DNA of 61,583 bases, the filler included, from Trichosphaerium sp. ATCC 40318 (lineage: Eukaryota > Protista > Tubulinea): the NCBI GenBank assembly GCA_038496445.1. It is 3 parts of 3 records of this genome, joined end to end, with 100 filler letters (N's around TTAATTAATTAA, not from the genome) between each part and the next. Parts side by side here need not be neighbours in the genome. Positions count along the whole stretch, not along the records: positions 24,332 to 55,962 come from JALMLS010000118.1; 2 more parts are not named here. The stretch is one strand, 5' to 3'. The position numbers were made by a program, and so were the translations under genes. The notes under the pieces were generated by a model. The model ran no database searches. It was not told the DNA's origin and was given only the letters and a program-made list of their open reading frames with translations. Below, piece by piece: positions 1-49,715 of the stretch; position 1 is the first letter of the stretch; each line of letters opens with the position of its first letter.

Positions 1-3000
1 GACGCCTGTCTTATTAAAACCGTTACCAGCTTCATCCGGAGGTTGTAGCTCTGATGTGGACTTGACCTATGTTGCACCACCAAAATGTCAAAACCGCCAC
101 TAGCCATTTTTAAATGTTTTACGCACCTTTTTTAAAACAGGCTCCGCAGGCGGTGACGCCTTGTGGTTTGCTGCTGAATTTGCGCGCTGCAAGGTTTGGA
201 CTCTACAAGCGTGACGAACTTAGTTTGAATTGAATCATACATACAATGTCTAAATACGGGAATGTAGGTCGAACCTGGGACTTCCATGCACATTACATCG
301 TTCTGTAGTTGCTCTAGTCCTGCACTGACTTGATCAAACTCGTCTATCAGAAAACCTAACGGATCATGTTAAAATAAGAGATCGCTTTCAGATTTTGGAG
401 ACCTGTTGTCGATGAGTCCTCCAAATCAGGCTGTGGCGGCGATTCAACTACTATTTGTGGTTGTTCAGGCTGCTCTTCTGACTCTTGCGCACTTTCAAGC
501 GCTTCAGCTTCAACATACTACACGATTGATTAACCCCATATCAATGGTTTGGATTCTGTACCTCCTCATATGCCTGCTGCAGTAATTCTGGGTTTTTATG
601 TGCTATCACAAGTTATATTCCTTACGGGATACCCTTAAACGTCATATTTAAGCGACGTACCTGCACAAATAAGCTCGCCATCAACTACAGCGTAGTCATT
701 AAAAACAGGATCGAAGTTGGGATCACTAAACGGGGTTAGTTGGTCATTTTGAAGTGTGTTTTTACAAAAATTATGATGGAACCTACGATGGGTGCATTAG
801 TATGCCATCACATTTTGAGCATTTGAAGCATGATCCACATATCCACCCAAGACCAGAAATATCGAAAGCGTTGTCGTTGTGTGCGGGCTTGTTGCATCTA
901 ACCGCGGTCATGTTAGATCTTTTGTAGAGGAGGATATTTAAGGTGTAAGCGCGCACCCAATGCATCGTTTCAAGAATCCTTCTTCACAATTTTCGCAGCT
1001 ATGCCGGTTAATACGATGATAACAGAAGGTCATTCAGATTGCTGGTTTTCGTACAGTAGCTTGCCAGTTTCATTGAGCGTCATTTGACCACACAAATGCC
1101 TGTTGGAGAAAAGATTAATAACCTAGTCGTTAATAGAGCCAAGGTCTACCTCGTTCCACAAAAGCGTTACACTTTTCGCAAGTAAGGCATTCCCAATGAT
1201 AACATCTGTCCTTGAACATGATAGAAAGTGTCTTTCCAATATCCAATTTGCATGAAGGACACTTTGGTGAAGGCTTTTCTCCATTTTCGTCTGTCTTTAT
1301 GAATCATGCTGTTAGCCAAACAGGTTCCACACACGTGCTTGAATTATAACGTACTGCTGCTTCCATATCAAAAGTGATTATAGCGCGGAAGTTTGAAGGA
1401 TAGAGTCTGTTGTCTGCATCGTTGTGGTCCAAATCTGACTTGTGAAAAACGATACGTTGTTTGTTTTTGCGTATGAATTCAGTATTGATCCAAACGCCAA
1501 ACAATCGATGCTTTTTTACTTAATGTTGAGAGCTACAGTAGCGTTATAAGCGTACCTTAACGTTTTTGTAAAAGAGCTCCACTTTGACATCTCCATTAAC
1601 AGGTATGCCGTTCAGCTTGAAACGCATCCAGTTTTCGCGTCCTTGGGTATCTCTAGACTAATGTGGTGTATCAGGAACGCGAACAGGCTTGTCTTGGACG
1701 CGAATAGAGGACGTACAGCGGGTTTAGCATAAAACGAGCGTTTGGGGCGGACTGCTATGCCGACGTAGTATTTATCACGTTTTTGTGGCAGGTTATAGAC
1801 ACGAATAGAGTTAAGATACACCGTGCGAGATCCAACGTAGCTCGCAGAGGGCTTTAGAGATTGCTCAAAGTATGTGATATAGCGCTGCTGGCTAGGTATA
1901 GTAACACCCTTTAAAAAACATGGTTAGAAGATTATCTAAGCGTATCGATGATGTGGCATTCACGATGGTATTGTAACACTTACGTTACCGTCATGTGTCC
2001 TCTTTTCACCAAAAAATGTGAGCGCTTGGGAGGCGGTTCTGCAGGTACAAGAATGAAGGAGGTAGCAGCATATGATTGTTCCAGTTCTGCCCTAAAGAAA
2101 ACAATATATATTAGGAGGACATCTAACTTTGTCGCCAATCTGGTGCTTAATAAAGCTTGCCTTTCCAGCCTTGCAGTGAAGTACGGCCACATTGGCTGGA
2201 TCTCTGTCTAGCCTAAAGCGGGGAATTATTGGATAAGTGCAAACAAGTGTATATACCATTCAGTTATGTCCGCGCAGATTTTGATGATAAGATCAAAGGG
2301 CGGAGGATTGTGATCATCAAACGGATATTCAGCCACTCTATTCTGGAAGTGGTCATGGTTGTATTTTCTTTCGGAGCACAGATTGTAAATCTAGTGGTGG
2401 GGTAGTCGAAATGGGTCATGACAAATTGTACTTGAATGGTTCAATAAAATATGTAATTACCTTGTAGTGATTCTAAGAGCGGTGAGTGGCTTGCAATGTA
2501 ACGTGAACATAATATGAGTCATTTGGGTAAAATCAACCCACGTACTGGATGGCTTGTGGTCAAAAAGTTCTTTACGTCCTTCATGCTGTTACGATAGAGA
2601 CCCTCAATACCTTTTTGCGTTAGTTTTGTTTTGTTAATGTCAATTCAATTTATGTGCGCAGTAAGGTGGTGCCAGCTCCAACTCATTTGCACGTGCGTCA
2701 AGCCCAGAGTGCAAAACACATAACCGCACTTTATATAGAGTACGCAACTAGCGAACGAACTAAAGTCACGGAAATTTGGGGTTTACAGCGTTATCTAGCA
2801 CGCCGCTTCGAAAAACGTGCGTTGCTTGCCATTTCAAAATTTTTATTCTTCTGGTGGACTACGTACCTTGCGCTGGAAATCCCATGGCTATGATGCGATC
2901 GGTTATGTAGGACAAGTCTGCCGAAAGGTGTAATGTAAATAGTTGTGCGTTTTGCGGTAAGTAGAAGTAATAAGGCGTGCCGTACCTAGATTAAACTTTC

Positions 3001-3064
3001 CAGATATGTAGCGCCGTTTCTTCATGGATACCTTAGTCCGTATAACGTTAAAAGGCTTATCCAT
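1..3064 (-). CDS. PTEN-like phosphatase (phosphatase + C2) with C-terminal LIM-type Cys/His domains; multi-exon, 3' end runs off the window
   Basis: Spliced by eye: [56 protein letters not shown]...[10 protein letters not shown]...YPFDDHNPP...[19 protein letters not shown]...[11 protein letters not shown]; C2 region ([19 protein letters not shown]); then CxxC...H/CxxCFKCxxC repeats ([23 protein letters not shown]). Confidence 0.9.
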
Positions 3065-3331
3065 CTTGTATAGCAAGGATAATGATCGTTGTGGTGCAGG
3101 AACGAACCTTGCGGGTCGCAAGTACAAAAGCTATTCAGTTTTTTTCTCCAGAAAAAAAAAGTCAGCGCCAGTTTTTCTCATTCACGTGGGAGTTATTTAA
3201 TGAAAAAAGAGCGTGTATTAGTATACAATGATTCCTAACTTTATTTGGGTGCGTTGGTTACATAGATGAAGAGTGATCAAAGTGGAAATCATAAGGAGAA
3301 AAAAAAAACTGAAATTCTACTTGTCACATGT

Positions 3332-4435
3332 TCACGTGCTTGGCGCCGCTGTAGATTTGTCTTTGGATTCTTGTTTCTCTCCGTCGTTCGTGGATTTGTC
3401 TTTTAAAGACTCTGGCATTGCCTCTGGACCACAGTAGTATTGTGCTCTTTCCCAGTTTTCTTCTTTGGATTGTTCTATAGCTCGAGCGCGTTCTTCTTTG
3501 CGTTCTTTGCGCCTCTTCAAAAAATTGTCATAGGTGTGATAATAGTCTTGCAGTTCTGGCGCTAATCCTGGAGCATTTTGTTGCTTTAAGTAAGTAGCAC
3601 CAATGACATACGGCAATCGTATGAACTCTGCCACTTCGTTTATGTACAGGGCTGCGAAAAAAGGTTGAAACAGCGCCGACTTGGTTTGTACATAGGCCTC
3701 CAAGTCAGCAATTGACGCCAATCCTACGGTATTATACGCTAGCACTATTGTGTCTGCCCCTGTTGGTTACCAAAGGTGTAAGTAAACATTGTAGACTAAC
3801 AATATTTTGACAGTTTACCTGCTAGATGTGTAATGCCGGCCAAGGCAGCTAATCCTCCTAGCCATACATCTAAAGTCTTGTTAGTGGATACTCAACTTCA
3901 TTTGTACAATATTACGCACATGTGTACAATTGGACACCTGGTAATAAGTACCTAGGTACGCGCATGAGCGATGACGTTGGTTTGGTAGTGTAGCGTACTT
4001 TATGCTGAAATTTACGCGTGCAATAGCGCTCAACTCGTCTTTTTTGTGCATGCGTTGCTTCAAGAGTATAGCCAGTTGTTCTTTTTTGTAAAGTGCGTCT
4101 TGCTCGTCGTCACTCAGCTCTGCTAATTTATCCTCAAGCTCTTTCGCTTTTTTGATAGCGTTCGCGTCAGTAGTGGACGGAGGGGCCTGATTGGGCGTTG
4201 TTTCTTCAGTTTTTTTGTTTTCTTCTGATTTCACTGTATCCTTTGCGTGTACCGTACAGAACCAGCGCGTTTGGCAGGTGAATGAGTGGGTATAAGATCG
4301 GTTGCGTATAACGCGTCTATAGTGTGCGCCAGTACTGATGGGCCTTGTTTGAACTCGGTGCCTGCGATTACGCGGTGTATTTGATCTTTTCGTAACCTGT
4401 GGCGCGTGTAGCGCGTGAACAGTTCTACATTGCAT
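3332..4435 (-). CDS. Probable mitochondrial membrane protein, FAM210/DUF1279-like
   Basis: Arg/Ser/Thr-rich, acid-free N-terminus (presequence-like), coiled coil, then hydrophobic segments ending FFAALYINEVAEFIRLPYVIGAT, resembling the DUF1279 motif FAxAYxxxKxxxPxRLPxT. Several introns. Confidence 0.55.
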
Positions 4436-24331: not shown

Positions 24332-25693
24332 TTGTTTATAATACTATATCCGTGAGCAACAATGACCTTTTATGGCGTTGAGGTGCTTTTAGAAAATGCA
24401 ATTGATAATAGTATCAATCACTCGCCTCCAGAAATTTGATTTATTTTGGTACTTTTGTAACAATAAAAAAGTTGATCGTGTTGGGCCATCCAAGCTGTTT
24501 TTGTTTGTAAAAACGTAGTGTTTTAAGACAAATACATTACTCATTATTAACGGTAAAGACTTATATAACTAATCTTGCCTAGTGAGGTCCGCTAGCAATG
24601 TATTCTCTGATGTTGGCAAAATATTCGCAAGAAAAATGCAACTTGTCCTCGTTTTTGTGATTGTTTGTGCTACTCTGGTATCTTGTGATACGTGCAATGC
24701 ATGGGCCGGACATACAGGAAGTGATACAGTATGACAAATAGCTTATTGCTACTGTAGGAGGTACTGGTTTGATTTATTTAAATTCCAACTGAGAAATAAT
24801 ACAGGAGAACAGAGTACCAAGATCGTGATTTGTATAGGATGGAACATATAAGTAGCTTTGTAGCCAGCCTTTAAAATACATGAATAGGGTTATCATCTTT
24901 TTGATGGCAATTAAGGCATTGTCAGAAACTTGTTTTTAGCTCTGGGAGCTAGTACATTTGGCAACAACTTAGCCTGCCACACCTACAATCCAATACTTTA
25001 CAATAGGGAACCTAAAAGTTGAACTTATAGAAGAGTTGGATACCAGTGGGTGCTCTATTACAGCATGTACAGCTATAGCAAACGAAATCCCAGCCTATAA
25101 TTGTGACTTAGGATCACAGTAGGTAGTTACAGAAAGTTCACTTTGTCCCATTTACGTGACACGCTTAACAAAAAGTATGTTGTAATTGTTTACCAGTATC
25201 AGCTCTGTTGAGAGCGGTTTGCATGACGGCTTTCCACGTGATATAAAAATTAAGAAATGACTTTGACAATAACTGTTGTACCATAAGTCAGTTCCATTGC
25301 TTAATTGTTCGGCAATTGGCTCCTAGAAAACCAACAAATACAATAAATGAACTTTTCAGGCGTTTCAGTGGAGCAAGCGCTTACTTATTTACAAAGGAAG
25401 AGCAATTCAGCAGCGTTTAGTAAAAAAGTAGATGAAACATTCTTGAAACAACTTGAAAGCATCTTAGATATCTCAAATACACGCTTGACGCAACAACTCG
25501 ATCAACTGTTGTTAAAACACGGATGCCAACCAAACAACTTCAAACCAACGTTTAGAACACTCTGAGTGCCTTGACACACCAAAACACAAGCAAATAAAAG
25601 AGTACGTTTCTGTTTGTTCCAAACCAGCCTTTTTCTTTCACTTTCAAGCCAGTTCGCTTTCTCGCTTTCTTAACAAGATATTGTAGTCTTGTG

Positions 25694-39720: not shown

Positions 39721-40698
39721 TTATTGTTCCCAATGTATACTAGTTGTATCTACAAATGATTTAGTTATCTTTTTACAGTCCTTTATTCTGATACTTTTAA
39801 GAGCTTTCATGTATTGTAAGGCATTATTTGTGATTGCATGACAGTTATTAAGTACCAAGTGTTCGAGATTGATCAAATGTTTGAACCCTGAGTCTGTTAT
39901 TTTCCCACTTATACTCAACGACAAACATTTGACATTGACCAATGATTTAAGTCCATCATCTGTTATTAATGCTCCATTAGCAATACAAATAGTATGTACA
40001 TTCCCAAGATGGTTGAGCCATGATTCTGTTGCACGACCTATTCTAATTTCATGTACATCTTTGAGTGCCTTTATTCCTTCTTCAGTAATATTGAAGCAAC
40101 CACAGATATCAATAGTGTGTACACCTGTAAGTGCGATCAATGAAGCATCTGTTACCTTTGCCAAACGCAAATTTATATTGTGTACAGTGTGCTTTCCTCC
40201 ATGTACTAATGAGAGTATACCATAATCTGATACTTTAGTAAATCTTAGATTTATCGCGTGAACGCCAACCAATGCAGCGAGAGATTTTTCATGGAGCTCA
40301 ATATGACCAAGACTTATTGAATGAACACCACTTAAGGCTGTCATCCAATCACCTTTATTCGTGGTTGATGTGATACTGACATGATCTAGGGTTATAGTAC
40401 GAACGCCAGAAAGGTATCTCAAGTCAGTGTCTGATATAGTTAACTTACGACATGCTATCTCAGTGTTTTTGAGCAAAGGGCTGCCTTTTAGAACACGACA
40501 ATCAGATGAATTGCGCAAACGGATGTAATCGAAGCCAATATTACAGCGAATAATGTTATTAAACGCATGAGAGACTGTGGAAGCTTTAATACGTTGTGTT
40601 CTGTTTAAACAGCGAAGAATATGCGTTAAGGTCTCCGGAGGGACATTTTGGGTCCAACGATGGACGTTGTTTATCGTTTCACGTTGATTTGTTGCCAT
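39721..40698 (-). CDS. F-box + LRR protein
   Basis: VPPETLTHILRCL...ASTVSHAFNNII (F-box), LRRs GVHTIDICGCFNITEEGIKAL; uninterrupted ORF. Confidence 0.9.
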   Translation of the reverse strand: MATNQRETINNVHRWTQNVPPETLTHILRCLNRTQRIKASTVSHAFNNIIRCNIGFDYIRLRNSSDCRVLKGSPLLKNTEIACRKLTISDTDLRYLSGVRTITLDHVSITSTTNKGDWMTALSGVHSISLGHIELHEKSLAALVGVHAINLRFTKVSDYGILSLVHGGKHTVHNINLRLAKVTDASLIALTGVHTIDICGCFNITEEGIKALKDVHEIRIGRATESWLNHLGNVHTICIANGALITDDGLKSLVNVKCLSLSISGKITDSGFKHLINLEHLVLNNCHAITNNALQYMKALKSIRIKDCKKITKSFVDTTSIHWEQ

Positions 40699-42420
40699 TG
40701 GTTGCTGTATAGGGTTCAAAAGGTCAAATCCAGTCGGTCAAAATACCACGTGATTTTCCAAACTCACCAAAAAATTTTATGAACATATTTGACCCTGGCA
40801 GCGTTTACAAACACCACAGCAACGTTGGTAGTGTTTTGAGAGGTTTTTATGTCAATATACCTGCTTTGTTGTTTGAATGCTGCGAGAGCGCTTCTGTTAG
40901 CGTGGAGTAGGCGCTAGCGTAGCACTTGTACGTTATATACACGTACGTTGATTTTTAAAAAAACAGCAAATAGTGTGAGGCATTCGTCTGTGTTTGGCGG
41001 AATGCTCAAGCTTTGTTGACCATATAACCTTTAATTCGCTATTAGACTGATGTGGTTTTAACGTACGTGTGCCTACGTAAAATACTGCGATCGTCTTGCC
41101 AAGGTCTTTGAAAGTGACATTAAAAATGTGTTTATCACGTAAGGGACGTAAGTCGTACTATGCTAGACAGCATTGTGATTAATGGCACGCTAATAGTTCA
41201 CATTGTGATAGATCTACACCATCTAACAGAAGTGTAGATGTGCTAAAAGTGCTAAAAACTCACTAGAAAATACTAGTAAACTTGAATGATATGTTAAATC
41301 AACAGAACTAGCATTTTGTAACTAAACCATGACCTTGAATTCTCGCTATTCTAGGCACATAGATATGAAACTAACTAACTATAAATAAACATCTAAGCGC
41401 ACTCCTTCACAGATAGTGTGAATTTGTTTTTATTGGTAACTATCTCCTTACTCAGTTGAGCTTGTAGGTCCATCGCTAATCAATGAAAACTGTCCTAGCG
41501 TCAATTAGCATCTGAAAAAGGTACTCCAACGATGATTGCTCAAGAAAAGGAGCAGGCGAAGCAATTTTCTGACCCTTGCACCTAGGTATCGTTACAATCC
41601 TACTGCTTTGATAACGGAGCTAACCTAAACGTGTTGCTTCGCCTCATGAGTCTATTAATTATTTTAACAAACTTCAACTTAAACAGCTTCATGCTAAATC
41701 TGTGGATGAACTTGATGTTCTTAACAAACCGGCCAAATGAGTTGATGTTCCGGCGAGAAGGTGTTATTCTCTATGGTTCAGAGACTTGAAACAGAGCAGA
41801 CGTGGCAAAGAATCTCATTGTTGAATACAAAAAGGAAGTACAGTTTTTGCTCTGTTTTTGAAACGTTTGTCACGTGCTTATCACGTTTTTGTTAGGTAAA
41901 CCTGTAGCTACGCTATGGATGACTTTCATCTTGATTAGTTACCTACCGCTGGCTCGTTCAATGCCTGCAAACTCAGAGGGTCTCTGGAAGCTCTTTGTCA
42001 CAATGAACTACCTAAGTGCTAGTCGCTAAGGCATGGCAACTCTTAAGCACATCACAGTACATTAACGCACTTCATTGTATAAAGTTAATGTCGTCACCAC
42101 AGCCTATGTAATGCCCGTTTTTGTTATAATTTTGGAATACTGTACTCTAATTATTATTAGAGAGTAGCAAAAATTGTGAAAGAATGGAAATACATACATG
42201 CGCAGAGAAAAAGGTAAAACGCTCAAACAGGGAATAAATTAGCAGATAATTTGTTGCATATACGGGAAAAAAACAAACTTTAATGTCACCACCATAGGCT
42301 ATGTAATCCACCGTTTTTAACAAATTCTTGTGACGATGTGCGCTAACTACTAGAGAGTAGCGCCAATTGCAAAAGAAGGATGGAAATCACCTACATACTA
42401 TGAAAAACGCAAAAAGTCAT

Positions 42421-42494: not shown

Positions 42495-44077
42495 CATTTA
42501 CAATCTTTCTACTAATACAAAGTGAGGCGATGACTTATGATTTGACTAATCAATCAAAGAGCGAGATACTTTTCACTCACTAAACATCAATCTATTCACT
42601 CTGATCACTCAAATCAATCTTGCCAGCGCAGTCATTCTATTAAACCAACCTCAAGCATCACACCTCCTCCTCTTTCAAGCTATAGTAATCATGATAAGAA
42701 CAAACGCTGTTTGGGCCGGCATAAAATTTTCACTGACACCGAATGGGCCAAAGGAACACTCACTTGCATCAATTGTGCGCATTCATACAACGAGAATAGA
42801 GAATGTCCGTGAACAAGCCATTCAAGAGTGGTCCGAAGCAAAAAAGGCAACCAGAGGCCACGAAATCGCACATGATATAAGGCGCATACCTCACCACGTT
42901 GCTCTTGAACTGTGCGAATTATTATGGCAAGATACGTTCAAAGGTAACTCAATCAACCAACAAAAGAAATATTTTACGCGCCATGAACGCGGTTTGAACT
43001 TTGTTAGTGAAAAATAAAAACTTTTTCAACAATTAATTTTTTACCTAATACCACAAAAATTGTTTCGCATTCACCTGGTTTTGATCTTGTCACATTACTA
43101 ATAGCCCACAACAATCTTTCTACTAACAAAATTGTTTTGCATTCACCCGGTTTTGATCTTGTCACATAACTAACAAGCCCTCTCAACAATCTTACTACTA
43201 CTATACGACCGTGATTACAATCTTTCTACTAATATAAAGTGAACCGATGACTTATGATTTGACTAATCAATCAAAGATGAGAAGAGCGAGATAATCATGA
43301 CATAAGGCGCATACCTCACCACGTTGCTCTTGAACTATACGACCATTTACGACCATTTAATCAATAAGAGCTGAAGCGGTCACTTTCAAAATAACTAATC
43401 ACTAGAGATCACGTGTTTCAATTACAATATGGCCTACTACTCATTCTGTTCAACACCTTCTCTGCAATTAGTGTAATGGACTATAACTCCTACATACCAC
43501 CAGTGTCATCAGTTGTAATCAAATGCAGACAAAGTAGAGTGCTAGTGCAATCAACAATACCTTTTTCCGTCTTCGTTTCGACAAAAATCTTCAGCTTTCG
43601 TACGAAAGTGATATGTCTAGCCACAGCAGCGTACATGCGTTGTCTTTCTTGTAAATACGCTCATATCAGATTATCCAAATGCATGCATGAGGCTGGAACC
43701 GAATTGCTACAACGTCAAGGTTGTTTACGATATTATTACGGTTGTGTAGCTAATATGAACGCACAGAGCGTGTGTCATCTGGTTTAGCCATTTTGATAGC
43801 GTTTGACGTTGACATTTGCTTTTTTATTCTGTGGCCCGAATTTCAGTAGATTCTTTCAACAATAGCTTGTAGAGAACGATATCTGTATTATTACGTAGTA
43901 TGAACGCATATTAACAACTTGTTACCTATTTCTGCTTTACAGTGTCCAAAGCGCTTTGTTTCGCGTTTTTTACAAAGCCGTCACCTGTTTCAGACAGTGG
44001 AACACCGGGCCAATGAGTTCCATAGTTTGTACTTCGTTTACGTCGTCATAAAAAGTCTTGTAACAAAAATTTCAGGA

Positions 44078-44194
44078 ATTAGACCAATACCTCAATCCCA
44101 ACAAAAGCGGTGCAAGACGATCTGGGAGGAAAGGAACACACGGTCCCTGGCCGATAGCTCTGGCGCAGAGCGAGCATGTGTGAGGTTTATTTAC
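44078..44194 (-). repeat. Split direct repeat B2 (117 bp; identical to B1 at 44386-44502)
   Basis: attagaccaatacctc...gaggtttatttac present twice, offset 308. Confidence 0.95.
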
Positions 44195-44282
44195 AAAACA
44201 TGATCGCGAATGCAATAAAATACAAAAGAGAAAAAGAAAAAATTTTTTTTTTTTTTTTTAAAAAAGGGTGGTAGTGGGAGGG

Positions 44283-44387
44283 TGATTTCTGCTTGCTATC
44301 GTATAAACCAGCTTGAGTCGGTTGTCTGTCTTTGTTGTATCAGTCCAGTTTGTTCAAACGCCTGAAATGTCTCACATGTTCAGACAT
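44283..44387 (-). repeat. Split direct repeat A2 (105 bp; identical to A1 at 49032-49136)
   Basis: tgatttctgcttgctatcg...atgttcagacat present twice, offset 4749. Confidence 0.95.
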
Positions 44388-44507
44388 TAGACCAATACCT
44401 CAATCCCAACAAAAGCGGTGCAAGACGATCTGGGAGGAAAGGAACACACGGTCCCTGGCCGATAGCTCTGGCGCAGAGCGAGCATGTGTGAGGTTTATTT
44501 ACCCATG

Positions 44508-45568
44508 TCAATCCTCAAGCCATGGTTGAGGTTGACCCTCCTCCCCAGAAGCGTCTGAAGCTGTCATTTTTCCTAATCTAATTCTTTGCGTCATAAGTTT
44601 TTGAGCTATAAGTCGGTCTTGCTTTCCATGGACAACGTATATATTATATGCATCTGAGCTCCAATCGCCCATATACTTAATCCATTCCTTTGATACTCCT
44701 GCTGCAGCTGCGTATGTGGCTCCTCCTCGTCTATAGGAGTGTCCAGCATATTGTCTAGCGTCCTTATATGTGCCTTCTATTTGTAGTTTTGTCCATGCTA
44801 CAAACTTGCTGTATGTAATCTGAACCCACCGTCCTTGTTTCTTATATCTTAACAGAGATCTGTATCTAGCAGGGTTCACTTTCCTAATTAGCATGTCTAT
44901 TGCTTGTACCGGACACAGTACATGTCCTTCAAGGTTAGTCAAGGGTAACACGTGTTTACGTTCTCGAAATCTAATCGTTTTTGTCTTACGTATTGTATAC
45001 CACCATGTATCTCGATCTCTCGTCATGTTAGCGAGTGCTATGTGTCGCAGGATGTCGAAATCAGCTGCTTTTTGCGGTACTAGGTTGCCAATGCGCAGAA
45101 AGCCCCAGAAAGCGATGAGAGCTCCCGTCCAAAAAACTAAGTCCTTGTGTTTGCGTAAATCTATGTTTTGTCGTATCTTGAGAAGCATCAGCGGTGTGAT
45201 TGGCCTTTTCCTGTCAATCTTGTGCCCCAATGATGTTCTTAAACTTCTCAGCATATCGTAGTATTGCACACAGTCAGTTCGAGGGTCTGTGTGTCCTAAT
45301 CTTTTGCATAGCCAAGCCCAATGTGACAGATATACCCTGATAGTATCTGGAAGTAATCCTTTCGAGTTCTCGCTCTCTTTTGCCCAAAGCGCTACAACCA
45401 GTTGCAAGTTCTCATGCGACAGAGGCATCCATTGATCCTCTGGAACTTTCAAGCAAATCAACGCTAAAATTACAGCTGTAATAGCTGATCGTCTATTGTT
45501 GTTAGTGCTTTCAGGATACGCTGTCCTGAGGATATTGACACGTTTTTGTTCTGCTAATTGCTTAATAT
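44508..45568 (-). CDS. Tyrosine recombinase of the YR retrotransposon
   Basis: Catalytic set FLRIGN (R), KTKT (K), GHSYRRGG (HxxR), GDWSS (W), AYNIY (Y). Frame stays open upstream of the listed ORF (IKQLAEQKRVNILRTAYPEST). Confidence 0.95.
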
Positions 45569-45588
45569 CTAGGAAAAAAAAATGAATT

Positions 45589-47190
45589 TTATTTAATAAA
45601 TCTTCCGCTAGTGTTAGTAAAACCAGCTGTCGCCGCCGCTTTATGAAACCTCTCCCAATTGTATCTACTTAAGGAGTCGGCTAGCACATTATCCTTTGAG
45701 GCAATCCAAGAGGACTCAAGCCTGAATCCCAAAGAAGCCGACCACAAATGAAGATCGTATATCATCTTCATGGCTCGTTTGTTACGCATGACCAATTTGT
45801 TCACCGCTTGTACTACTCCTGTGTTGTCGATGAGCATGTTTCCCACTATCTTATTGCGAAAGAGGTGGCGCCATTCCTTGACAGCCATCCACACTGCGTA
45901 CATCTCTTTAACGTTGATGTGCCATTTGAACTCTGCATTGGTAAATGTGTGTATAATCCACTTACCCTTGAAAAACGCTGCTGCTGCAGCCGATGATGCG
46001 TCTGTTTGCAAGGATCCTTTGACCAACGGGAGAGGAGACAGGAGTATAGCTTTCCCGTCCCACTCGTCCATCATATCACGCCACCAAAATAAATCTTTGC
46101 GCATTGCTGCTGAGCAGAACACCCATTGCTCATTGTTAGTTGCTTTTCGCATGCCGTCATACAGGCGTCTCAAGTAGGTGTGACCACCGTAAACAACTTG
46201 AGCTGCGAAGTTGAGCGTACCAGTCAACTTCATCCACTTACGCAATTTTGCTGATTTTTGTGTAAGAAACCAGCTTATGAGCTCCTTAATTTTTTGTTTC
46301 TTGCGTTGTGTGAGTGCAACTGTTCTTGAAACCATGTCAAAATCTAAACCCAAAAAGGTAAGTCGCTGTTTGGGTCCCTCACACTTCTCTGGGGTCATGG
46401 TAAAGCCCAGGTCTTTAAGCATTTTAACCAGAACCTCAAGACCTTGTTTAGCTTCTTCTGGTGATCTTGCAACAATGAGCCAGTCGTCAAGGTATACTAC
46501 ATGAAACCAGCATCCTTGCTTAGCAAACAGGCGTGAGACTATGCCCATCAACCTAACAAAAACGAATGGCGCTCGGTTCCATCCAAAAGGGAGTCTGCTA
46601 TCAGCATAGCACTTGCCCTGCCAACAGAAACCCAATAAATCATGATCGTCTGGGTGTACCGGAACCATCCGGTATGCACAAAACATGTCCGCTTTAGCTA
46701 ACCAGAGCTTTCCTTTGTGGTCTCGAATAAAGGTGATAACGTCCTTTAGAGCTGAGAGAGCGAACTTAGGAGGTGGTACTGAAAGGTCGTTAATAGACAT
46801 GCCCACCGGAAGATTGAGACAGACAATCTTTCTTATCTTATTCCTAAAATTGCCTTTTGCATCGTATTTAGGTAATGCGGCTATCTTGTTGCAGCGTCTG
46901 ATATGGTTGCCTATATAAATCCAACCGTTCTCCTTTTCCATCTTAATGTCAGCTTCCACAAACTTCTTAAAGGTAATGCATGTTTTAGAGTTGTCCAAGT
47001 GGAAGCTTTTAACTATGGTGTCTTTTGGTACAATACGAATACCTGTATGTATCCAAGATTTAAGCCATAACCAGTCTTTGTCGCTATTAGTTAACTGCTC
47101 CCAAACTTTATAGCGCTGAGATATAGGTGCAACAGAATATGGTAAAACATTTTTATTAGCAGGCAAGACAGGTACAGCGGCTTTTAATTG
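45589..47190 (-). CDS. Reverse transcriptase + RNase H (DIRS-type), in frame with gag
   Basis: KADMFCAYRMVPV, LPFGWNRAP, YLDD, FLGL; RNase H LQTDASS, HINVKEMYA, IDNTGVV, NVLADSLSR. Confidence 0.95.
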   Translation of the reverse strand, partial: QLKAAVPVLPANKNVLPYSVAPISQRYKVWEQLTNSDKDWLWLKSWIHTGIRIVPKDTIVKSFHLDNSKTCITFKKFVEADIKMEKENGWIYIGNHIRRCNKIAALPKYDAKGNFRNKIRKIVCLNLPVGMSINDLSVPPPKFALSALKDVITFIRDHKGKLWLAKADMFCAYRMVPVHPDDHDLLGFCWQGKCYADSRLPFGWNRAPFVFVRLMGIVSRLFAKQGCWFHVVYLDDWLIVARSPEEAKQGLEVLVKMLKDLGFTMTPEKCEGPKQRLTFLGLDFDMVSRTVALTQRKKQKIKELISWFLTQKSAKLRKWMKLTGTLNFAAQVVYGGHTYLRRLYDGMRKATNNEQWVFCSAAMRKDLFWWRDMMDEWDGKAILLSPLPLVKGSLQTDASSAAAAAFFKGKWIIHTFTNAEFKWHINVKEMYAVWMAVKEWRHLFRNKIVGNMLIDNTGVVQAVNKLVMRNKRAMKMIYDLHLWSASLGFRLESSWIASKDNVLADSLSRYNWERFHKAAATAGFTNTSGRFIK

Positions 47191-49032
47191 TCAAGTACGA
47201 CGAGGAGAAGGACATCCATTGATCCAATGTCCAGGGTTACCGCAATTCAGGCAAACGTGTTCCATTATGCAGTTGCCAGCTGCCTTGAAGCGGCAGTTGT
47301 CGGTGCCAGTGATATTTGCATTGATACACGCCATGTGTATGTTATAAATACGCCAAGGGTTTCTCTTGCTGCCCCTTTGTCTGTCGCGTAGCTGCTGAGT
47401 GGTAAAACGCTGACGAGGAGGGGCCTGTGGGCGCTGTTGTTGTTGTTGAGGTGCCTGTGACGGATAAGCTAGCTGTTGTTGCTGGTATTGTTGCGTTTGT
47501 ACTGGACCTAAATACATACTTAGGTACAACGAAGGCACCGTGTAGCTAGCGTTGGTTCTTTCCCAACAAACACGGACCGCTCTGTCAAAGACTAATACCT
47601 GTTGCCATGGGTATAGACACAGTAATTGCCTGAGCTGGTCCTGATATGCTTTGTGTCGGTTGAGCATATCCTGGGTTAGGAGTCTGTGTTTGACGTCCTC
47701 GTTTAACTGCTCCTCTATCATAACCAGCCTGGCCATAAGGTCTGGGGCGCTTGTTACGCAGACCGGCTTTGATGCCTTGGTCAACGAGCGCGCTGATGTA
47801 CTGTGCAGATACGTCAGTGGTGCCACAAACTCAGGGAAGTAGACCGGCTTGTCAATGCCGAATCTAACAACACCTGAAAAAAGGGGTGCTTCTGCAAAGA
47901 GAATACGAAGTAGTTTCGCTTTTTCTGCACTTACCGCTGTTAATTGGTGCGGAGAGCTGAACGCATTACCAAAAACATTGGGAGCTGTTGCGGTTGCTAC
48001 ACCAACACGTGAGTCAAAGTCAGGGAGCGCAAACGGCGTACTTGTAGGAGCGCTAGCCGGCGTTTGTGGAGGAGCTGTAGGAGCCATGGAGGGAGCTGCA
48101 CCTCCAGTCATGTATTGCTGAGTGTGCTGGGTTGAACCCGTATGCGTCTGAACGGACAGAGTGCTTTGCTTTTTCGCAATGACGCCTGCTTTTGCAAGGT
48201 ATGAGTCAGCGCGTTGTCTAGCGCGAAAAACATTATCTTCCAGCGACTTTGCTTTTTGCCACGTGGAAGTAGTCGTACTTGGTTTAGTAACGGGCTGTTG
48301 CTGCGTTACATTTTGTGGCTGCTGTTGAGCCGCCAAACGTTCTTTTTCCATTTTTGCGCATTTGGCTCTTTCCATTGCTACCGCCTCTTCCGCTAACTTG
48401 ACACGTAGTATCAGGGCGTTGTTAGCTGCTTGCAGGCCCTTAATAACCGGTATAGGTGAATCTAAGTCTTCATCAGCTGTCGCAAATTCGTCGTCGATAT
48501 TAAGCTCTCCGCCTGTCGCATTAAGCTCTTCATCTGAATTAGGATTAGTAGACGACGGAGAAGACAAAATTTCAGCTTTTTCATTTCGTTTGGAAAAGGG
48601 GGAAAATTTTCTAATTCGATCAATAATTTTCGTAGAGTCTTGGGCGTCTTGTAGTATCTCTTTTAGTTTATCGGAGCGTTTACGCGATAAATTAAGTTTG
48701 AATTGGGTACCGATCCTATCCCAGTTAGGGTATTGCTTGCTGTGGATGGCTGCAGCGACATGTTGGAAAATTTCTATTAAATCCGGTCTTGTTTTCTTAG
48801 CCAATATATCCCATAAATTAACACCCCTAATACGCTTATCTGGGTCTAACGTTACCCTGAAAAAGTTTATGATGTCGTCTTTGGTAACAGTATTTGGATT
48901 AGCGGCGATGGTCTTTTCAAAGTCGGCGAGAGGTCCAGCGGCATTGACAGCGATTTTAAACCAGTACGGACCTACAGGCGGCCGGCTTTGGTCTAGCCGG
49001 TCTTCGTCGGTGATTTCGTTATTCTTTTCCAT
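47191..49032 (-). CDS. Gag-like ORF1 of the YR retrotransposon
   Basis: 613 aa; YPWQQVLVFDRAVR capsid-like motif of DIRS/Ngaro gags; C-terminal CxF-H-CxxC and CLNCGNPGHWINGC zinc knuckle. Confidence 0.9.
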   Translation of the reverse strand: MEKNNEITDEDRLDQSRPPVGPYWFKIAVNAAGPLADFEKTIAANPNTVTKDDIINFFRVTLDPDKRIRGVNLWDILAKKTRPDLIEIFQHVAAAIHSKQYPNWDRIGTQFKLNLSRKRSDKLKEILQDAQDSTKIIDRIRKFSPFSKRNEKAEILSSPSSTNPNSDEELNATGGELNIDDEFATADEDLDSPIPVIKGLQAANNALILRVKLAEEAVAMERAKCAKMEKERLAAQQQPQNVTQQQPVTKPSTTTSTWQKAKSLEDNVFRARQRADSYLAKAGVIAKKQSTLSVQTHTGSTQHTQQYMTGGAAPSMAPTAPPQTPASAPTSTPFALPDFDSRVGVATATAPNVFGNAFSSPHQLTAVSAEKAKLLRILFAEAPLFSGVVRFGIDKPVYFPEFVAPLTYLHSTSARSLTKASKPVCVTSAPDLMARLVMIEEQLNEDVKHRLLTQDMLNRHKAYQDQLRQLLCLYPWQQVLVFDRAVRVCWERTNASYTVPSLYLSMYLGPVQTQQYQQQQLAYPSQAPQQQQQRPQAPPRQRFTTQQLRDRQRGSKRNPWRIYNIHMACINANITGTDNCRFKAAGNCIMEHVCLNCGNPGHWINGCPSPRRT

Positions 49033-49442
49033 GATTTCTGCTTGCTATCGTATAAACCAGCTTGAGTCGGTTGTCTGTCTTTGTTGTATCAGTCCAGTTT
49101 GTTCAAACGCCTGAAATGTCTCACATGTTCAGACATAAAAGAAGATTTGGTATTTTTTTATTTTCTAATCGTACAACTATAGTGGCGCTACACCGGTAGG
49201 ACAAAGATCTCAGGTGCTGACCTTGATGTCACATAAAGAAGATTTGAATTGTTGGATTGTCACATACATTGCAAGAACAAACACGCTTGAAAAAAGGGTA
49301 CAAGTATCCTTCCACCATGTCATGTGATAAAACATGCCTCTTCTATTATCCTTCAACCACTTCAGAATGGCCTGTTTGTTTGGTTAACTGTGGAGATTAT
49401 TTACTAGAGACGCTACAACCAAGATTAAACTTTTCACCGCCT

Positions 49443-49715
49443 TTTTCAGTTCTGTCAATCAGCTTATATTATTGTACATCCATAACAGATAAAGGTGTCA
49501 AGGCCTTGGCCGGTGTCCATGATATCGATTTAACAGCGACACAAGTAACAGATGAAGCCATCACAGCATTGATTGGTGTACGTATTATTGTGTTACACGA
49601 TACAAATAAAGTAACAGATAAAGGTTTGAAGTCATTGAATGGTGTACAGGCTATCAGTGCAAAAAGATGTGAATCAATCAAATATAAATACGGACCAACC
49701 TACACTTATAAGTAA
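49443..49715 (+). pseudogene. LRR fragment of the same F-box/LRR family
   Basis: ISLYYCTSITDKGVKALAGVHDIDLTATQVTDEAITALIGV...VTDKGLKSLNGV; no intact F-box upstream. Confidence 0.7.

Follow-up and report, generated by a model that had tools for sequence, protein, structure and literature searches.

An in-frame UGA conserved between gag and RT-RNase H suggests stop codon readthrough in a branch of Ngaro-type retrotransposons

Introduction

How is Pol produced when a stop codon stands between gag and pol in one and the same reading frame? This question is raised by a tyrosine recombinase (YR) retrotransposon in the genome of the protist Trichosphaerium sp. ATCC 40318 (GenBank assembly GCA_038496445.1). 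The window, that is, the whole stretch of DNA that was analyzed, comprises 61,583 nucleotides (nt) and consists of three parts joined by filler letters; positions 24,332 to 55,962, in which the element is located, are derived from JALMLS010000118.1. Occupying 44071..49136 on the minus strand, the locus is an intact and young Ngaro-type YR retrotransposon of 5.07 kb, hereafter called the focal element. To our knowledge, Pol production in YR retrotransposons has not been studied before. Comparison with related elements, as reported here, makes it probable that Pol of the focal element is made as a fusion of Gag with reverse transcriptase (RT) plus RNase H (RH) by programmed readthrough of the UGA.

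Results

A single UGA separates gag and RT-RH

On the minus strand, the junction reads CGT ACT TGA CAA TTA AAA GCC GCT GTA CCT GTC TTG CCT. One TGA is the sole stop between a gag of 613 codons and an RT-RH of 533 codons, both of which lie in one frame. An earlier note on this DNA had described gag and RT-RH as split by a single UGA followed by CAATTA, which is borne out by the sequence at 47193..47191. The first in-frame Met after the UGA, placed by the same note some 80 codons downstream, was found at codon 84 (ATG 46941..46939). The following features make up the junction and the two open reading frames (ORFs) that it joins.

47194..49032, minus strand: gag ORF, 613 codons (ORF reading; gag relatives in the same genome)
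47206..47256, minus strand: C-terminal CCHC zinc knuckle of gag, CLNCGNPGHWINGC, lying a few codons 5' of the stop (zf-CCHC_2, residues 593-609)
47191..47193, minus strand: proposed readthrough codon, an in-frame UGA that divides gag from RT-RH in the context U-UGA-C (conserved in 15 lineages)
47185..47190, minus strand: CAATTA hexamer (CARYYA / yeast CAAUUA leaky context), common to lineage C396; CAATCA in the C452 group
46942..47190, minus strand: 83 codons from the UGA to the first in-frame AUG, conserved protein (LPYSVA, KVW, DKDWLWLKSWI) with saturated synonymous change
45592..47190, minus strand: RT-RH frame, 533 codons, TAA at 45591..45589, RVT_1 domain at about 46342-46779

The RT-RH ORF was matched by Pfam RVT_1 (E 4e-21) and weakly by RT_RNaseH (E 5.8e-4, short of the curated cut-off); the motifs TDAS and DN can be seen in it. 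The match of the gag zinc knuckle to zf-CCHC_2 (E 5.6e-4) was likewise below the curated cut-off, and the motif is visible by eye.

The in-frame UGA is conserved among relatives

Relatives in this genome were found by protein searches of the host genome and the junction was read in each lineage. The focal lineage is labelled C341; identities given below are RT amino-acid identities to the focal copy, followed by the stop and the hexamer 3' of it.

C341 (focal): 100%, TGA CAATTA
C396: 70%, TGA CAATTA
C452/C398/C77/C566 group: 61%, TGA CAATCA
C26: 58%, TGA CTGCCA
C38: 52-62%, TGA CTGCCG
C368: 50-58%, TGA AATGTA
C30/C541: 48-49%, TGA AAACTT
C85: 34%, TGA AACGTG
C41: 32%, TGA AATCTC
C269 (degenerate): 29-37%, TGA TGCTTC
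C509 (degenerate): about 33%, TGA CTGTTC

Throughout the lineages of this genome (11/11), gag and RT are in one frame with exactly one stop at the junction, and this stop is always TGA. The closest RT-RH proteins from outside this genome are 30-36% identical, and the corresponding loci were read as follows.

Clytia hemisphaerica (L065): TGA CTCCTC
Hydractinia symbiolongicarpus (L066): TGA CTATCT
Metagenome contig L069: TGA CAACCC
L070 / L071: TGA CTGCCA
P0019 contig: gag and RT in one frame, judged from gene coordinates alone
L074 and L076: ORFs overlap, in a different frame
L075: gag in a different frame
L067: RT frame with several stops upstream and no in-frame gag; the RT ORF as called begins at its own ATG
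Sycon ciliatum (L068): the 120 codons upstream are free of stops

In the Clytia, Hydractinia, L069 and L070/L071 elements, which are 30-34% identical, the TGA comes after the zinc-finger end of gag and is in frame with RT. A single in-frame TGA was thus found in 15/15 lineages with the gag-stop-RT layout, from at least three host sources, and none of the relatives with this layout carries a sense codon at the site. These counts dispose of the concern, raised with the earlier note, that the focal stop might be a private nonsense mutation, and they lend strong comparative support to the Gag-RT-RH readthrough fusion which that note had proposed. Three longer database proteins (P0044, P0049 and P0066) showed no gag zinc-finger motif on inspection.

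An RT-RH tree was rooted with methyltransferase-bearing DIRS proteins (PF05869), which fall outside. On this tree, elements of the UGA type form two well supported clades, one comprising all lineages of the host genome and the other the hydrozoan and metagenome elements. Lineages without an in-frame UGA fall between the two, and the UGA is therefore either an old trait with losses or one that was gained twice.

Two further observations concern individual relatives. Two degenerate Ngaro-like copies (L024 and L025, G000:C509:5562-9416 and 1-3139) lie in opposite orientation on one contig; in both, the junction reads TGA CTGTTC and another in-frame TGA occurs within RT. The public RT models of the Clytia and Hydractinia elements (P0008 and P0010) begin 3' of the start of RT homology: at these loci the gene start is at 4001, homology extends from about 3887-3896 and the in-frame TGA lies at about 3844-3850. 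As the models start 3' of the TGA, the gag part and the likely fusion are unannotated.

The junction stop is invariant while the other stops vary

RT-RH of the same elements terminates at TAA in four cases, TAG in five and TGA in two, and YR terminates at TGA in five, TAA in four and TAG in two. TGA is therefore present at 15/15 junctions vs 7/22 at the RT-RH and YR ends taken together (TAA 8, TAG 7, TGA 7; Fisher p 2e-5). When just 8 independent lineages are counted, the probability is about 1e-4 for the stop always being TGA and about 1.5e-4 for it always being in frame. Since the other stops of the same elements vary, inheritance or host bias does not account for the invariant junction TGA. 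Moreover, synonymous sites are saturated between C341 and C396 (proportion of synonymous sites that differ, pS, 0.75), so that there has been ample time for a neutral TGA-to-TAA transition. RT-RH ends in TAA (ATT AAA TAA) in the three lineages that carry a CARYYA hexamer after the junction stop; leakiness decreases in the order UGA > UAG > UAA, UAA being the least leaky (PMC4615788).

Codons after the UGA are constrained as protein

For codons +1 to +82 after the UGA, the proportion of nonsynonymous sites that differ (pN) between C341 and C396 is 0.34 vs the pS of 0.75, and between C26 and C38 the ratio of nonsynonymous to synonymous substitution rates (dN/dS) in the region after the UGA is 0.24. 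LPYSVA (codons 16-21) is unchanged despite four synonymous changes, and in the comparison of C341 with C396 PRRT, the four codons 5' of the stop, is unchanged despite three. In the focal copy as well as in C38, C85, Clytia, Hydractinia and L069, the stretch from the UGA to the conserved VW and DKDWxWL motifs lacks an AUG. By these comparative criteria, the codons following the UGA are under purifying selection and are translated.

The context 3' of the UGA differs between lineages

CARYYA follows the UGA in three lineages, as CAAUUA in C341 and C396 and as CAAUCA in the C452 group, and the L069 hexamer (CAACCC) agrees with it at 5/6 positions. UGA-CUN is present in six lineages. The +4 base is C in 10/15 lineages. 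Set against the known viral contexts, the focal element and C396 carry exactly the UGA-CAAUUA of type I (stop-CARYYA of tobacco mosaic virus, TMV; CAAUUA, the optimum in yeast), with UGA-CAAUCA in the C452 group, and the UGA-CUA of Hydractinia, one of the six UGA-CUN junctions, is a type II context (UGA-CGG, UGA-CUA). None of these contexts is common to the whole family, and the four UGA-AAN lineages stand outside every named class. The proposal of the earlier note that CARYYA is the signal consequently holds in part: the hexamer is exact in C341 and C396 and present as CAATCA in the C452 group, and it is not conserved elsewhere. Because just these three closest lineages carry CAATTA or CAATCA, the hexamer would be a lineage-specific enhancer at most and not a family-wide signal.

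The focal context, U-UGA-C followed by CAAUUA, is the leakiest known combination. For UGA, a C at +4 brings basal readthrough up to about 3-4% in mammalian cells, and in yeast readthrough is stimulated by CAAUUA (PMC4615788); retroviruses need Gag-Pol at 5-10% of Gag (PMC4178896). As the former value is near the latter, UGA plus a C at +4 might suffice, and across the family the UGA and the +4 base alone probably matter.

Layout of the focal element and its surroundings

Direct-repeat analysis gave the layout A1-[gag, RT-RH, YR]-B1A2B2, with a spacing of 88 nt between A2 and B2. The remaining features of the element are the following.

49032..49136, minus strand: split direct repeat A1 of 105 nt, with 100% identity to A2 and the gag ATG at its 3' edge
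44511..45461, minus strand: YR ORF in a frame that differs from that of RT-RH, with HSYR and the catalytic Y in GDWSSDAYNIY; TGA at 44510..44508
44379..44502, minus strand: split direct repeat B1 of 124 nt, with 98% identity to B2
44283..44387, minus strand: split direct repeat A2, pair of A1
44071..44194, minus strand: split direct repeat B2, pair of B1

The order A1-[ORFs]-B1A2B2 is the defining Ngaro layout (PMC8547959), and the focal element was assigned to Ngaro on its split direct repeats in this order together with an RT and RNase H of the LTR-retroelement type and a YR with HxxR and a catalytic Tyr in place of a DDE integrase. The copy combines terminal repeats that are 100% and 98% identical with three intact ORFs. 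No Pfam domain for a protease, DDE integrase or methyltransferase was detected in any of the three focal ORFs. The element thus resembles Ngaro elements of the DIRS order (Cafeteria burkhardae, zebrafish and fungal Ngaros) in its gene order gag, RT-RNase H, YR, in its split direct repeats and in having none of these three domains detected. It differs in that its RT is just 32-33% identical to the nearest named relatives (hydrozoan elements) and in that its YR is unscored by Pfam PF00589.

A Pfam search of the focal YR ORF gave no match. The ORF aligns at E 4e-22 with a PF00589-carrying YR ORF that adjoins a related RT, and in this alignment HSYR and the Y of GDWSSDAYNIY pair with HSLR and the Y of GRWKSTAYQLY. 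The YR ORF ends in TGA CAT GGG TAA (window 44496-44510, minus strand), so that a second in-frame stop lies two codons after the UGA-C, at the start of repeat B1; a double stop is also found at the same place in C396 and C452a (TGA CGT GGG TAG in the latter). This second stop may serve as a fallback where the first one leaks, or may reflect conservation of the repeat terminus. Relative to RT-RH, the YR frame varies by lineage, being +1 in the focal copy and +2 in most others, where YR often overlaps the end of RT-RH, by 10-80 nt. In the C452 lineage (L005, G000:C452:11699-16288), RT-RH stops at TAA and the YR frame runs on directly in the same frame. Different lineages seem to express YR by different routes.

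The element is flanked by ORFs of the F-box/leucine-rich repeat (LRR) type at window positions 49257-49715 (plus strand) and 39721-40719 (minus strand), with matches to F-box (E 3e-5) and LRR_6 (E 3e-4). Three LRR-coding repeats of 63-66 nt lie just 5' of the element, at 49483-49655. Just 3' of it, window positions 42498-43342 contain several repeated segments of 47-63 nt, with 89-95% identity and 72-717 nt apart.

Host genes

A gene for the selenocysteine tRNA (tRNA-Sec) was found at G000:C5:742868-742954 and a multi-exon SepSecS gene at G000:C99:184861-186224; on account of these genes, the organism uses selenocysteine. Intronless HSP70 genes are present as two oppositely oriented pairs (G000:C8:25652-27466 / 66110-67924 and C56:189563-191377 / 211415-213229). 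Other HSP70-family genes of the host contain many short introns of about 40-90 nt. The host HSP70 is just about 65% identical to database proteins, animals and fungi alike, which suggests that no close relative is present in the collection searched.

Discussion

Readthrough and its rivals

The arrangement described above would be explained if Pol were made as a Gag-RT-RH fusion by programmed UGA readthrough, which, judged from the comparative data, we hold to be the probable answer. A single genomic RNA would be translated, and most ribosomes would terminate at the gag UGA and release Gag. In a minority, a near-cognate tRNA would read the UGA and translation would go on in frame, yielding a Gag-RT-RNase H of about 1147 residues. 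In this way, readthrough would keep the Pol:Gag ratio low and attach the enzyme to assemblies of Gag. With no protease domain found in the element, the fusion is probably active as such or is trimmed by host enzymes; YR retrotransposons are described as being without a protease (PMC3783388). We infer readthrough as the means by which the stop is passed, and likewise its efficiency and the role of the context.

Several observations weigh against this explanation. The 3' context is not conserved, with UGA-AAN in four lineages and UGA-U in one degenerate copy. For downstream structure, minimum folding energies were calculated in windows starting 5 nt 3' of the stop and ranked against all windows of each element. 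No enrichment was found (Fisher p 0.48, 0.23 and 0.07 for windows of 50, 70 and 100 nt, respectively), and the focal downstream window is among the least stable 2-14% of the element's own windows after adjustment for GC content. A significant hairpin begins about 10 nt 3' of the stop in C452a (z -4.1), and hairpins follow the stop in C30 and L069 as well; a hairpin is not common to the family. The focal family is single-copy at at least 72% DNA identity in the 70-Mb assembly searched, so that its base calls are without confirmation from a sister copy. The host has both a tRNA-Sec (61.7 bits, above the cut-off) and SepSecS, a machinery that by itself would permit selenocysteine at the UGA. Finally, the gag-UGA-pol junction of Tca2, a Ty1/copia element of Candida albicans, held a promoter and gave no readthrough in Saccharomyces cerevisiae reporters (PMC2194720). 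This warning applies to the focal element: given the Tca2 result, a gag-UGA-pol architecture alone is no proof of readthrough.

On account of this precedent, the main rival explanation is that RT-RH is translated independently of gag and that the UGA is a true terminator. Synthesis could start from an internal promoter or subgenomic mRNA, at an internal ribosome entry site, by non-AUG initiation just after the stop or by termination-reinitiation. Such a route is unlikely, albeit the one rival to which we give appreciable weight. A Met is present 5-7 residues 5' of the conserved VW motif in C396, C452, C26 and C368, and the YR of the same element, lying in another frame, must use some non-fusion route. 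Independent initiation leaves unexplained, however, why gag and RT-RH share a frame with zero extra stops in 15/15 lineages and why the codon between them is always the leakiest one. In the focal, C38, C85, Clytia, Hydractinia and L069 elements, no AUG intervenes between the stop and the conserved and selected N-terminal motifs, and termination-reinitiation would have to proceed where no AUG overlaps or abuts the stop. Even for Tca2, Pol was nonetheless concluded to come from gag-pol RNA (PMC2194720). Removal of the UGA by splicing, with Gag-Pol made from the spliced transcript, is improbable. The focal sequence GTACTTGACAATTAAAAG begins with GT, ends with AG, contains the stop and has a length of 18 nt, a multiple of 3, and could on these grounds be a short in-frame intron. 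At about 40-90 nt, as deduced from HSP70 exon spacing, the introns of the host are far longer, and in C396, the closest lineage, GT is missing from the four codons that close gag, stop included (AGA CGA ACC TGA); its size and the lack of a counterpart in C396 led to rejection of the candidate. Furthermore, the codons on either side of the stop have kept their protein sequence despite synonymous changes, and are thus exonic.

A selenocysteine at the UGA, of the kind known from the Naiad Penelope-like elements with their selenoproteins, is very improbable. Transposon selenoproteins do have a precedent (PMC8557442), the codon is exclusively UGA and the host genes just mentioned are present. On the other hand, no match to a selenocysteine insertion sequence (SECIS) was obtained at E up to 10 in the focal element and at E up to 5 in 10 related loci. 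No homologue has Cys, or any sense codon, at the site, whereas the UGAs of Naiad align with conserved Cys; the site itself is a variable linker after the zinc knuckle rather than a redox or metal site, and YR ORFs of the same elements also terminate at TGA. Least credible of all is that the stop arose by chance, as a private nonsense mutation in a dead copy, or that TGA is a sense codon in this organism. The single-copy status of the focal family would allow a private mutation, but the same TGA recurs in 15 lineages from at least three host sources, and the identity of the terminal repeats (100% and 98%) together with three intact ORFs speaks against a dead copy. Use of TGA as a sense codon was rejected, since no internal TGA occurs in four HSP70 ORFs without introns or in transposon polyprotein ORFs of 1300-1900 codons; reassignment was also rejected on the finding that YR ORFs terminate at TGA at the homologous C-terminus.

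Comparison with known systems

Readthrough at a gag-pol junction is well known as a mechanism from gammaretroviruses and was suspected in Tca2. In murine leukemia virus (MuLV), as in the focal element, gag and pol are in one frame and separated by one stop, and readthrough would in both cases give a minor Gag-Pol fraction (PMC4178896). The MuLV junction consists of UAG-G, an 8-nt spacer and a pseudoknot, whereas the focal element has UGA, no enriched downstream structure and no detected protease domain. Tca2 shares the in-frame UGA between gag and pol and the production of Pol from gag-pol RNA; it is, unlike the focal element, a long terminal repeat element with protease, integrase and a putative 3' pseudoknot. 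Naiad elements resemble the focal element in having an in-frame, non-terminating UGA in a retroelement ORF, but carry several UGAs at conserved Cys positions and a grade-A SECIS in the 3' untranslated region, in contrast to one linker UGA and no SECIS detected here.

According to reviews, the ORFs of YR elements overlap or, in Ngaro, usually do not (PMC9210276, PMC3783388, PMC3266345). In these descriptions, the ORFs of Ngaro elements are separate or overlapping and frameshifted, and neither an in-frame gag stop nor readthrough is mentioned. The literature searched contained no account of readthrough between gag and pol for Ngaro or DIRS elements; the primary Ngaro descriptions lie outside its coverage, and an earlier remark there is possible. 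Within that coverage, the statement in the earlier note that this recoding mode is undescribed for Ngaro/DIRS agrees with what can be searched. The findings thus point to a known kind of recoding in a retroelement order where it is apparently undocumented, with unusually broad comparative support at the level of sequence. The gain is moderate, because the mechanism is already well known from gammaretroviruses.

More tentatively, and with the balance of judgement somewhat against it, the in-frame gag-UGA-pol arrangement may be an old, clade-level expression strategy of one Ngaro-like branch, found in this selenocysteine-using eukaryote, in hydrozoans and in uncultured organisms. Such a strategy would work without the three classical cis signals, through the UGA and the +4 base alone or through a trans effect such as a MuLV-type interaction of RT with eRF1, and would yield an unprocessed Gag-RT-RH in elements without a detected protease domain.

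For annotation, the comparison means that the starts currently assigned to the RT ORFs of these elements are arbitrary internal ones, as in the Clytia and Hydractinia models, so that the actual product goes unrecorded. The diverged UGA contexts, more than 10 in number, would form a natural series for studying stop codon leakiness. A conserved in-frame UGA would extend the logic of the retroviral Gag/Gag-Pol ratio to an order described as being without protease and integrase.

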